DNA of 64,000 bases from Macrostomum hystrix (taxonomy: Eukaryota; Animalia; Platyhelminthes). Numbering within the stretch: position 1 is the first letter of the stretch; each line of letters starts with the position of its first letter. The notes beneath the pieces were generated by a model. That model saw only the letters and a program-made list of their open reading frames with translations, did not search any database and had not been told where the DNA came from. The DNA lies in contig CATNEN010000012.1 of assembly GCA_950097015.1 (NCBI GenBank), positions 434,001 to 498,000 of the forward strand. Direction: 5' to 3'. A program made the position numbers and the translations under genes. Below are positions 253-3,559 of this stretch, in pieces.

Positions 253-1634
253 TCACATAGTGAGCTCCATGATGGCATTCACAATATCGTTGTTATTCTT
301 CTTTAGCGCCTTGATGGCCTTCTTGCGTGAGACACTGGCCTGCTGCATCACCAGCTCGATCTCCTTCTCCTCAACCCCGGTGGCGTCAACCTCTTCGTCG
401 TCGTCCGACTCCTCGGCGATGGCCTCCTTGGCTAGGGCGGTGCCGCCACCAGAGGCGCCGACCGCGGCAGCCTTCGAGTCGCCGCCGATTGACTGCGAAA
501 AATTAAGAATGGAATATTTTACATGTATCATACTCGAATGGGATGAAAGTATTTAGAATCGAAGGGATTCCCTAACCAACTGTATTTGGATTTGAAGGGA
601 TTTCCTAACCAACTGTATTTCGATTTGAAGGGATTTCCCTAACTAATTGTAATTTGATTTGAAGGGGATTTCCCTAACTAATTGTATTTTATTTGAAGAG
701 ATTTCCCTAACTAATTGCATTTGATTTGAAGGGGATTTCCCTAACTAATTGTATTTTATTTGAAGAGATTTCCCAAAATAATTGCATTTGATTTGAAGGG
801 GATTTCCCTAACTAATTTTATTTTTATTTGAAGAGATTTCCCTAACTAATTTTATTTTGATTTGAAGAGATTTCCCAAAATAATTGCATTTGACATTTGA
901 TTTGAAGGAGATTTTCCTAAATAGTTATATTTTTATTTGAAGGGGATTTCCCTAAAAAATTGCTTTTGATTTGAAGGGGATTTCCCTAACTAATTGTATT
1001 TAGATTGGAAGGGATTTCCCTAACCTATCATATTCAGATTCGAAAGGATTTCCCCAAACAGTTGTGCTTAGATTTAAAGGGATTCCCGCTAGAATAATGT
1101 TTCCAAATTTAGATGCAAAGTGATTTGCGGAAGAAACGACTTTGATGAGAATTACTCAAGCCTCCCAAGAATCCCAAACAATCCCATGGAGGGTGAGAGC
1201 AAATGCCAACTAACCTGGGCTCCTTCGCGCAGCTTCTCAGCGGCTGCAATCTGGGCCTGAGCATTCAGGTCCTCAATCTTGGCCTCACCAAATACAACAT
1301 AGATATCGGCCGATGGCGCTTTGAACACATCAGGCTGCGAGATGACAAACAGAAGATTCTTGGACTTGCGAATTGTGACGCGATTCACCCCGGAGATCTG
1401 CTTCAAGCCCAGCTTGGACATGGCTTTGCGGGCCTTCTTCTCGCTGCGCGACTGCTTGCTCTTGCTAACTGGCTCCTCGGAGATGCCGGCTGCCGCGGCC
1501 AGCTGGCTGTGCGCCGCGGCGTCATCCGGGTGGACCTCCTCCAGATCCGGGGCGCCGTCCGACTCGGAGTCGGAGTCCGAGTCTTTGACCTTGACTTCGT
1601 CCTCCACAGGCTTCTTGCTGGTCTCCTGAACCAT
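253..1634 (-). CDS. NACA: Nascent polypeptide-associated complex alpha subunit; 2 exons (1634-1215, 492-253), 219 aa
   Basis: NAC domain [45 protein letters not shown]...[11 protein letters not shown] and C-terminal UBA-like [38 protein letters not shown]; phase-0 intron CAG|GTTAGT (1214) to TTTTCGCAG| (493) joins the two ORFs in frame. Confidence 0.95.
565..1090. repeat. Degenerate ~30-bp tandem repeat in NACA intron
   Basis: Recurrent unit ~GATTTGAAGGGATTTCCCTAACTAATTGTATTT. Confidence 0.9.
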
Positions 1635-1849
1635 GGCGGTTTTGCTTGCGCTAGTCTGCAAATTTCAGTCCTCTTAAAGCTGTACTTTTAGTATGAACTG
1701 TTGTCATCTGCATTGCTCCGAGGATATTGTTTAGTAGTTATTGATAGTTGGCTTTACCTGTTTAGGGATTTTCTTTAGGAATCTATATTGGAGCTTTACT
1801 CGAATATGTTTTTTCGGACTTCTCCGTTTGGTGGATATTAAGGCTGCCC

Positions 1850-1985
1850 TTGGATACTGGCTCCTAGGATTTCCCGAGGATACCGGCTCCTAGGATTTCC
1901 CTTGGATACCGGCTCCTAGGATTTCCCTAGGATACCGGCTCCTAGGATTTCCCTAGGATACCGGCTCCTAGGATTTCCCAGGGAT
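1850..1985. repeat. 23-bp tandem repeat
   Basis: GATACCGGCTCCTAGGATTTCCC-type unit, about 6 copies between RPS21 and NACA. Confidence 0.9.
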
Positions 1986-2237
1986 ATGGGATACAGGATT
2001 TTCCTTATTGGTAGATATTTCCCTACCAGTTTTCAAGCTGTTACTGATATTCAAAAGCGAGTCAAGAAAAAATAACAAAACAGAAAGAGAGTTTATCCAC
2101 AGAACTGCACACTCAGCGCATCAACAAGTATAATTAAGCTTTCATTTGTTTAGCAAACAATCGATTCCTCAAGGCGAATTATACTATTCCATCCGTTTCT
2201 TTCAGAAGCAATTAATTCAGTTGCTCATTTAACAAGC

Positions 2238-2495
2238 TCAGGCAGTGCGATTGGTCTCGTCCAGCTTAAGCAGAAACGGCGAAGTGATGTTGCGCTCGTT
2301 CGTTAGCTGATTGAGCGACATGTCGCTCTCGCCGCGACGCCGCACATCGCCGCTGATGTTGAAGATCTTCTTGCCGCCGGTCATGCGGCCGTCAGGATTG
2401 AGCTCGGCGAAGGCCAGCTGAATCGAAGCGTGATCCTTCGGGCCGATGATGCGCTGGGTGGCGTCGCATTTGCGGGGTACAATCGTGTGCTCCAT
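2238..2495 (-). CDS. RPS21: 40S ribosomal protein eS21, divergent, intronless CDS, 85 aa
   Basis: eS21 motifs VPRKC..T.RIIGPKDHASIQ and RRRGESD.SL; N-terminus shorter than canonical. Confidence 0.9.
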   Translation of the reverse strand: MEHTIVPRKCDATQRIIGPKDHASIQLAFAELNPDGRMTGGKKIFNISGDVRRRGESDMSLNQLTNERNITSPFLLKLDETNRTA

Positions 2496-3021
2496 GATTT
2501 ATAATAGGGCTGGCGGATGCTTGAGCTGCAATGCGAAGAGCATCGCGGCTTGGCTAGCTTTCGCTGTTTAAGCTAATTCGGCTTGTTGAAGAGCACTTGC
2601 TACATGTAAGCATAAGGCTCTGTTAACAGACTGGGCCATAATCGTAACAGGCTTCTCTCTAGCTATTATTTAGCCTCTACAAAATACTTCCAAGCCGGTC
2701 ATTACCCAAGAGGTCTTTGCCCTCTCTCCCAGTCACACAAGAGGTCACAGCCCTACCCTAGCCACTATCATTCATTAAAAACCTAATCGCAACAACTAAA
2801 TAGTAAATCTCACTAAAATTTACTGACCAGAAAAAAATAAATAAAAAACTAATAATAAAAGTTTCAATCCAATCGAAACCAGCAAGGACGCAACAGGGAC
2901 CTTGGATTTATTTTCCCTTTGCACGCATCATAATTTCGACAATCTTTGCAACGCCAGTTAAACTTTGTGCACAGGCCCACTAAGGCTTGTGCAGTTCATT
3001 GATCTAGTCGATCATAGGCCT

Positions 3022-3384
3022 TTATTCTCCCTCAACGTTGATGGTCTGCTTGCCCTTGAACTCTGTGCAGGGCACGTAGGTGACGAGGGTGTACAGCTTG
3101 TGAGCGCTGTCCTCGTCTTCATTGCGCTTTCGAGCCAAGCGCACCCGGACACGGAAGGGCACATTGCGCACGCCCTGGCTCCACACAAACTTGTTCAGCC
3201 TGGTGTCCAGCCGAACATCTGGCGTGCCCATCATGCGCTCGGCGAATTTCCGAATCTCCGTCATAGCGCGCGGCGCCCTGCGCTTGAAGCCAATGCCGTG
3301 GATGCGCTTGTGCAGATTGATGGTGTACTCGCGGGTAACCACGTCTTTTAGTGCGCTCTTCTTCTTCTCGCGACGCGGGGCCAT
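3022..3384 (-). CDS. RPL31: 60S ribosomal protein eL31, intronless CDS, 120 aa
   Basis: [26 protein letters not shown]...[47 protein letters not shown] is the eL31 signature; start taken at ATG 3384, downstream of acceptor CCTCAG| (3402). Confidence 0.96.
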
Positions 3385-3559
3385 GCTGCTGCTACTAGGA
3401 GCTGAGGAATTTCGGTAAAATATCTTTAGTAAACACACTAACTACCATACACTAACATTAAGCATAGAAAACTTTTACTGTTTACTAACAATACTTATCT
3501 AGTCAAAAACTTTTTAATTTTTTTACTAAAAAACTTGCAATTTTCTCTTTGTACCTATG

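Follow-up and report, generated by a model that had tools for sequence, protein, structure and literature searches.

SL2-type operons of Caenorhabditis elegans are polycistrons resolved by 3' end formation and spliced leader (SL) trans-splicing, with a typical spacing of ~100 nt between genes, and housekeeping genes, including those for ribosomal proteins, are frequent members of the operons of this nematode. Among flatworms, polycistrons have been described in Schistosoma and other trematodes, such as that of cytochrome b-c1 subunit 7 and enolase, which contain an intercistronic sequence and receive one SL whose terminal three bases are AUG (PMC12582326). The intercistronic gaps in S. mansoni have a mean of 233 bp and a median of 99 bp, and operon membership is poorly conserved among flatworms (PMC12582326). 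In Macrostomum lignano, genes were assigned to operons when they lie on the same strand, are trans-spliced, and are separated by a repeat-adjusted gap of <1 kb (Ustyantsev and Berezikov, 2021; PMC8629364). The gaps between trans-spliced neighbors in this species are bimodal, those of <1 kb forming the operon mode, and operon gaps have their mode at ~100 bp; in total, 10,458 genes (~15% of genes) were placed in operons, 18% of which are three-gene operons (PMC8629364).

The window analyzed here, a stretch of 64,000 nt from the 220-Mb genome of Macrostomum hystrix (contig CATNEN010000012.1), carries three translation genes on its minus strand, RPL31, RPS21 and NACA, which had been proposed in an initial annotation as a polycistronic unit resolved by SL trans-splicing. 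As summarized in Table 1, all three were found at the proposed positions, and their products, eL31, eS21 and NAC-alpha, matched their Pfam families above the gathering score, the match of eS21 being confined to profile positions 13-78 because its N-terminus is short. The NAC-alpha protein joined from both exons comprises 219 aa, and the presence of the UBA domain identified it as NAC-alpha and not NAC-beta. The distances between the coding sequences (CDS), put at ~530 and ~600 nt in the initial annotation, were measured as 526 and 603 nt. The three genes are consecutive, with no opposite-strand gene interrupting them; plus-strand open reading frames inside the trio were rejected as genes, as they run antisense to GC-rich CDS without contig support. 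The description of the other genes as lying kilobases apart was roughly right, since the nearest upstream gene on the same strand, a GGACT-like gene at 8185-9339, is 4.8 kb off, and past NACA the genes lie on the opposite strand. In the source genome, NACA is present in a single copy and eS21 was the sole match found, while a second copy of eL31 (98% identical) was located on another contig, on which no eS21 or NACA match was detected. An exact-protein look-up of M. hystrix eS21 returned no match.

Table 1. Features of the eL31-eS21-NACA cluster, in window coordinates and in the order of the minus strand.
Feature	Position	Strand	Evidence or remark
Candidate outron and promoter, AT-rich (26% GC), upstream of the eL31 acceptor	3403..4770	-	Single-copy DNA
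eL31 acceptor CCTCAG (AG 3403-3402) and 17-nt leader; first exon base 3401	3385..3403	-	SL loose ends behind 3402 in 3/4 runs (X8, X2, X5)
eL31 (RPL31) CDS, 120 aa, intronless	3022..3384	-	Pfam PF01198 Ribosomal_L31e, 7.7e-45, 151 bits
eL31 3' UTR, ~160 nt, AATAAA at 2912-2907	2862..3021	-	Contig spanning 2862-3102 (run X8)
Spacer 1, 335 nt, single copy	2527..2861	-	Unique in genome
eS21 acceptor TTGCAG (AG 2527-2526) and 30-nt leader; first exon base 2525	2496..2527	-	SL loose ends behind 2526 in 3/4 runs (X8, X1, X2)
eS21 (RPS21) CDS, 85 aa, intronless	2238..2495	-	Pfam PF01249 Ribosomal_S21e, 1.9e-24, 86 bits
eS21 3' UTR, ~142 nt	2096..2237	-	Contigs 2096-2526 (X8) and 2098-2526 (X2)
Spacer 2, 439 nt, single copy	1657..2095	-	Unique in genome
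NACA acceptor TTGCAG (AG 1657-1656) and 21-nt leader; first exon base 1655	1635..1657	-	SL loose ends behind 1656 in 3/4 runs (X8, X1, X2)
NAC-alpha exon 1, coding part, 140 codons, NAC domain	1215..1634	-	PF01849, 1.6e-23, 83 bits
NACA intron, 722 nt, GT..AG	493..1214	-	Joint of 492 to 1215 in contigs of three runs (X8, X1, X2)
NAC-alpha exon 2, coding part, 79 aa and stop, HYPK-type UBA domain	253..492	-	PF19026, 3.6e-11, 43 bits
NACA 3' UTR, first part	1..252	-	X8 contig extends ~507 nt past window start

The 5' ends of the mRNAs were read in RNA-derived contigs, not raw reads, from four runs of three studies. The leader was joined exactly at the three bases at which the initial annotation had predicted SL junctions, namely 3401, 2525 and 1655, and the lengths that it had given for the leaders between acceptor and ATG likewise held for all three genes. 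The joined sequence is the 3' part of the Macrostomum SL (...CTGCGAAGACTCAATTTATTGCATG), seen over 24-26 nt, and agrees with the corresponding portion of the 35-nt SL published for M. lignano; at the eL31 acceptor, the SL 3' end appears in the loose ends behind 3402 as its reverse complement. Of the three acceptors, two fit the published trans-splice motif [T/C]TNCAG exactly. In the source genome, the SL 3' part also occurs at least 20 times as an exact copy with GT after it, as in SL RNA genes, and the copy that was read has a GTAAG splice donor, a U-rich stretch (ATATTTTTAG) that may be read as Sm-like, and then a short inverted repeat. In the contigs, no cis-spliced 5' exon was seen, and the only well-supported joint was that of the NACA intron. 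Each mRNA of the trio is a separate mature molecule whose 5' end is made by SL trans-splicing. In contrast to the SL2-type operons of C. elegans, one identical leader is found at all three sites, with no downstream-specific SL2, whereas the single SL ending in AUG is the same arrangement as in trematode operons, which differ from the trio in gene content.

At the 3' side, the NACA mRNA ends at ~433494 on the source contig, ~15 nt after an AATAAA, and all mRNA 3' ends are approximate because they were taken from contig ends. The gaps that separate the 3' end of one mRNA from the acceptor of the following gene amount to 335 and 439 nt, three to four times the spacing typical of C. elegans; the genes are adjacent on one strand, all three receive the SL, and the repeat-adjusted gaps are <1 kb, and the trio therefore falls within the published definition of a M. 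lignano operon. Spacer 2 includes a tandem array of 26 nt x 5.4 at 1847-1986 (TRF; to 2005 in the 78-nt row), the subtraction of which leaves about 280 nt, and the NACA intron consists mostly of a 34-nt tandem array at 549-1084. These minisatellites on both sides of NACA exon 1 have a common TAGGGAAATCC core. Both spacers being single copy, dispersed repeats were ruled out as their source, and upstream of eL31 a dispersed repeat was found only at 4770-5020, the remainder being unique in the genome. Regarding snoRNAs or other structured RNAs in the spacers, no Rfam match at the gathering score was obtained within window positions 1-9000, and no tRNA was detected. The predicted RNA folding of spacer 1 was no better than that of shuffled sequences (z = -0.19), and a structured RNA in spacer 2 was rejected because its z of -4.8 is explained by the tandem repeat, which is partly palindromic.

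The same gene order and orientation were identified on two scaffolds of M. lignano, NIVC01000127.1 and NIVC01000162.1 (GCA_002269645.1). The CDS of the two species are 86-89% identical, the eL31 proteins are 100% identical, and an acceptor-like CAG precedes each ATG in M. lignano as it does here. In common with the SL operons of that species (PMC8629364), the M. hystrix trio has the same SL over 24-26 nt, the acceptor motif, a spacing of <1 kb, repeat-inflated spacers and the three-gene size. The M. lignano spacers, in contrast, are longer (1259 and about 770-860 nt), unalignable, and contain other tandem arrays, although the gaps are <1 kb after subtraction of a 927-nt array. When the DNA upstream of eL31 and the two spacers were compared with M. 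lignano by permissive blastn, the best E was 0.02. The eL31 acceptor lies 2 nt from the ATG in M. lignano versus 17 nt in M. hystrix, and the eS21 leader, which contains a TAA stop in M. hystrix, is open in frame in M. lignano, where the eS21 gene model begins at the base after the TTTGCAG acceptor. Synteny was rejected as a sign of constraint on the trio itself and says little, because synteny extends, on one M. lignano scaffold, to the GGACT-like gene located 4.5-4.8 kb upstream. In a word search with eS21 for deeper synteny, M. lignano was the only named flatworm match. The trio was not found named in a literature search, and its genes had no match in the supplement to the paper on operons of parasitic flatworms.

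Taken together, the trio probably represents a Macrostomum-type SL operon of constitutively expressed translation genes in the order eL31, eS21, NAC-alpha. Transcription by RNA polymerase II would begin somewhere in the unique, AT-rich 1.4 kb that precede eL31 and continue across the three genes, ~3.9 kb in all, as far as the NACA poly(A) site; the precursor would then be divided into three capped mRNAs by cleavage/polyadenylation together with SL trans-splicing, as in C. elegans. Past the SL AUG, leaky scanning would allow translation from the own AUG of each gene. The terminal AUG of the SL has a weak context (U at -3) and is out of frame for eL31, followed by a TAA stop for eS21, and in frame and open for NACA. 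The own AUGs, in contrast, are strong, with A (eL31, eS21) or G (NACA) at -3 and G at +4 in all three. Leaky scanning is therefore the likely route to protein as judged from these contexts. For NACA, whose own AUG opens the sequence MVQET..., translation may alternatively start 8 codons earlier, the leader of both species continuing the frame of the SL AUG without a stop (MTSASKTA-M over 21 nt in M. hystrix and MTSSTAQAA-M over 24 nt in M. lignano). We consider it unlikely that the trio is a selectively maintained macrostomid translation operon in which NAC-alpha starts at the SL AUG and the TAGGGAAATCC-core minisatellites flanking NACA exon 1 act on NACA expression.

Trans-splicing alone implies no operon, because ~60% of those M. 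lignano genes that are SL-trans-spliced are placed outside operons (PMC8629364). It is thus possible, albeit doubtful, that the three genes are independent transcription units with their own promoters in the spacers and short outrons, the SL trimming and standardizing their 5' ends and their closeness reflecting a compact housekeeping neighborhood. The spacing argues in this direction, since gaps of 335 and 439 nt exceed the ~100-bp mode of M. lignano operons several-fold and could accommodate promoters; the bimodal distribution published for M. lignano nevertheless puts gaps of <1 kb in the operon mode (PMC8629364), and the eL31-eS21 spacer of that species is nearly all 30-nt tandem array, leaving only ~90 nt of unique DNA for a promoter before the acceptor. 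The second eL31 copy, which works outside the cluster, also speaks against the operon. This unlinked paralogue resembles the cluster copy in having an acceptor of its own preceded by AT-rich DNA, in favor of independent units. The spacers are not conserved in sequence between the two species, which would count against promoters within them, but the DNA upstream of eL31 is no better conserved, so that the comparison favors neither view. No contig in the four runs covered 2527-2861, 1657-2095 or 3403-4600, and the depth bins 2601-2800 and 1801-2000, as well as all bins wholly in the spacers or upstream of eL31, were zero in all four, even though the trio mRNAs reached a word depth of 1400-2000 in run X8. 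The missing read-through is weak evidence, uninformative more than negative, because contigs drop rare molecules such as pre-mRNA.

The initial annotation had further inferred that the unit co-expresses a ribosome docking protein with a NAC subunit. On this reading, selection would have favored co-expression of tunnel-exit eL31 with its NAC partner at fixed stoichiometry. All three products work in translation, the gene order is identical in the two Macrostomum species, and in each run the word depths of the trio mRNAs differ by no more than about two-fold, depth being a poor measure. However, it is through the N-terminus of NAC-beta that NAC is anchored to the ribosome, and the gene in the cluster encodes NAC-alpha. 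Cryo-EM placement, as summarized in a 2024 paper, puts the anchor near eL19/eL22, and the same paper describes eL31 as a contact of Zuo1 (PMC11014269). The unlinked second eL31 copy likewise speaks against this reading, the conservation of order extends to the flanking gene and is not specific to the trio, and the neighbors of eS21 differ in Lingula and Lineus, in neither of which it lies next to eL31 or NAC. A selective origin of this kind thus appears highly improbable. Of the initial proposal, the trans-splicing at the three acceptors and the agreement with the published operon definition stand, whereas the functional docking rationale is not supported.

We therefore regard the trio as an ordinary further case of a known operon class that is common in Macrostomum, and, this class already accounting for ~15% of M. 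lignano genes, its importance beyond annotation is little. It adds a well-documented case with exact acceptors, approximate 3' ends and an orthologous M. lignano cluster, and indicates that trans-splice sites are predictable from sequence alone in the M. hystrix genome. As M. lignano is the one flatworm with stable transgenesis (PMC8629364), the trio could serve as a ~3.9-kb test case of highly expressed genes for the question of whether the distance-defined operons of Macrostomum are co-transcribed.

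The minus strand of the window was found to carry three real genes at 253-3403 according to Pfam profile matches, namely eL31, eS21 and NACA, the last of which encodes a NAC-alpha of 219 aa when its two exons are joined. Their coding regions have a GC content of about 59-60% vs 26-41% in the surrounding noncoding DNA, and are spaced by 526 nt (eL31-eS21) and 603 nt (eS21-NACA). In the M. hystrix assembly (G000), eS21 and NACA are each single copy. The only eS21 found there is unusual in that the first 12 positions of the profile are missing from it and its C-terminal tail diverges; it shows at most 59% identity to any eS21 outside Macrostomum among the word-search matches. 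It is also intronless, unlike the genes of Lingula and Lineus, which have introns and unrelated neighbours.

Features of the trio, its surroundings and related loci (window positions unless a contig of G000 or a sequence stretch, L, is named)
Feature	Position	Strand	Remarks
eL31 CDS	3384-3022	minus	120 aa; Pfam 7.7e-45
eS21 CDS	2495-2238	minus	85 aa; Pfam 1.9e-24
NAC-alpha exon 1	1634-1215	minus	NAC domain
NAC-alpha exon 2	492-253	minus	HYPK-type UBA domain
(CTG)n/(CAG)n run	97-138		within NACA 3' UTR; left out of RNA contig placement as repeat
Intron array	549-1084		34-nt unit
Spacer array	1847-2005		26-nt unit
Dispersed repeat	4770-5020		at least 321 candidate copies, ~90% identity
230-bp dispersed repeat	5025-5255		at least 955 candidate copies, 97-98% identity
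Apparent second copy of 230-bp repeat	near 6590-6800		an ORF there repeats its translation
GGACT-like gene	8185-9339	minus	two exons
Second eL31, intronless	G000:C2:4971038-4971397 (L002:1501-1860)		98% identical protein, 87% DNA
Array with core TAGGGAAATCC	L006, about 9870-9950		
SL RNA gene (example)	L011:1425-1545	minus	

Logan contigs of four RNA runs (X8, X1, X2 and X5; three studies, four organisms) were placed on the window, and at the trio they covered the three mRNAs only. The contig of each mRNA matched the window up to and including the G of its AG acceptor (3402, 2526 and 1656) and then continued into 20-26 loose letters, which read (TA)CTGCGAAGACTCAATTTATTGCAT when reverse-complemented. 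This leader was present at 3402 (eL31) in X8, X2 and X5, and at both 2526 (eS21) and 1656 (NACA) in X8, X1 and X2. It matches the 3' portion of the M. lignano spliced leader (SL), which is 35 nt long and reads CGGTCTCTTACTGCGAAGACTCAATTTATTGCATG (PMC8629364). The last G of the SL falls on the genomic G, which places the first exon bases at 3401, 2525 and 1655, exactly the joining sites proposed in the initial annotation, whose acceptor-to-ATG distances of 17, 30 and 21 nt (eL31, eS21 and NACA) we also measured. The sole well-supported cis joint was the NACA intron (492 to 1215, GT..AG, three runs), and no upstream cis exon was seen for the trio genes in the contigs of the four runs. The X8 contigs showed zero differences from the window, and this run therefore probably shares its strain with the assembly and is not independent of it, while X1 and X2 differed at a few bases and X5 by ~2%. 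The trans-splicing predicted for the trio is accurate, and the observation is confirmed.

A search of G000 (220 Mb, 42 contigs) revealed at least 20 copies of the exact SL 3' part followed by GT, and SL RNA genes were arranged in arrays with a period of ~11.6-11.7 kb on contigs C15, C17 and C42. In one copy, GCCGTAAAGACGGTCTCTTACTGCGAAGACTCAATTTATTGCATG is followed directly by GTAAG, then by a U-rich stretch ATATTTTTAG, which we read as Sm-like, and a short inverted repeat. At five more places the SL 3' end precedes GGC or GCT, not GGT, and these sites could be trans-spliced retrocopies or else dead copies.

The last three bases of the SL are AUG. In eL31 this AUG opens an out-of-frame 18-codon ORF overlapping the true start. 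In eS21 it lies in frame, but a TAA halts it after 9 codons; the eS21 leader of M. lignano is open in frame. In NACA it is in frame and open in both species and would add 8 codons here vs 9 in M. lignano. At position -3 the SL AUG carries U, whereas each gene's own AUG carries a purine (A in eL31 and eS21, G in NACA) and is followed by G at +4; by Kozak's rules, leaky scanning to each gene's own AUG would therefore be likely.

As judged from contig ends, the eL31 mRNA ends near 2862 (AATAAA at 2912-2907), the eS21 mRNA near 2096, and the NACA mRNA ~507 nt past the window start, 15 nt after AATAAA, leaving 335 and 439 nt to the next acceptor (the latter ~280 nt without the 26-nt array). In M. 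lignano, an operon is defined as a set of adjacent trans-spliced genes on one strand whose gaps, once adjusted for repeats, stay below 1 kb; the gaps have a main mode near 100 bp, 10,458 genes (15%) are assigned to operons, and 18% of the operons comprise three genes (Ustyantsev & Berezikov, PMC8629364). The trio agrees with this definition in every respect, with eL31 as its first member, whose acceptor is separated from the first dispersed repeat upstream by at least 1.37 kb of AT-rich, single-copy DNA, and NACA as its last, because the next genes lie on the opposite strand. Of the SL-resolved polycistronic unit initially proposed, the SL at all three acceptors stood, and the trio also fits the published operon criteria. 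Co-transcription itself remains a prediction: depth was zero in every bin wholly within the spacers or upstream of eL31 in the four runs, which is only weak evidence against it because contigs discard rare molecules. Three separate promoters, each with a short outron, are a less probable alternative, and the operon reading is plausible; we consider it fairly probable that the trio is genuinely transcribed as a polycistron.

Two M. lignano scaffolds (GCA_002269645.1) encode an eL31 protein identical to the one here, and on both of them eS21 and NAC follow eL31 on the same strand. The coding DNA is 86-89% identical, and the spacers, intron and upstream DNA of the trio gave no alignment with M. 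lignano, which marks the window as DNA of another Macrostomum species. The M. lignano spacers, at 1259 and about 770-860 nt, exceed those here but include 927 nt of a 30-nt and 283 nt of a 32-nt tandem array, respectively, and the M. lignano eS21 gene model starts at the base right after a TTTGCAG acceptor. Going upstream from eL31, the first gene on its strand resembles gamma-glutamyl cyclotransferase (GGACT/AIG2). It lies 4.8 kb away here and 4.5 kb away on M. lignano NIVC01000127.1; because this flanking gene is syntenic too, the trio synteny is weak evidence of constraint.

The two tandem arrays flanking NACA exon 1 have unlike units and a common core, TAGGGAAATCC, sense to the gene. In the 64-kb window this core has 9 exact matches (vs 0.08 expected), all of them within the two arrays. 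Across G000, two cores 15-24 nt apart occurred 87 times, against 2 with the reversed control. They fall at about two dozen loci, and the array at each of these has a unit of its own; these minisatellites are otherwise unrelated, and the core resembles kappaB-like GGGAAATCCC. Members of two families of dispersed repeats are present at 1.4-1.9 kb upstream of eL31. The 230-bp family resembles a young SINE or MITE, and the many variant-bearing RNA contigs on it indicate transcription within other RNAs.

The suggestion that the trio pairs a ribosome docking protein with a NAC subunit found no support, as the encoded subunit is NAC-alpha and the ribosome anchor belongs to NAC-beta. PMC11014269 summarises cryo-EM work in which the NAC-beta N-terminus anchors NAC near eL19/eL22, and names eL31 as a Zuo1 contact. 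Nor does the docking idea gain from the second eL31 copy outside the trio or from the unrelated neighbours of eS21 in Lingula and Lineus. In this second eL31, a TTTCAG acceptor of its own precedes the ATG by 21 nt, and the gene may form another trans-spliced pair with one for a SpoU-type RNA methyltransferase, which follows on its strand after ~780 nt; repeated elements of ~200 nt each lie between them. The docking account of the trio is unsupported. SL trans-splicing is documented for 10-20% of the genes of two other Macrostomum species (PMC10468722), and distance-defined operons are already documented in M. lignano; the trio adds one case to this known class.
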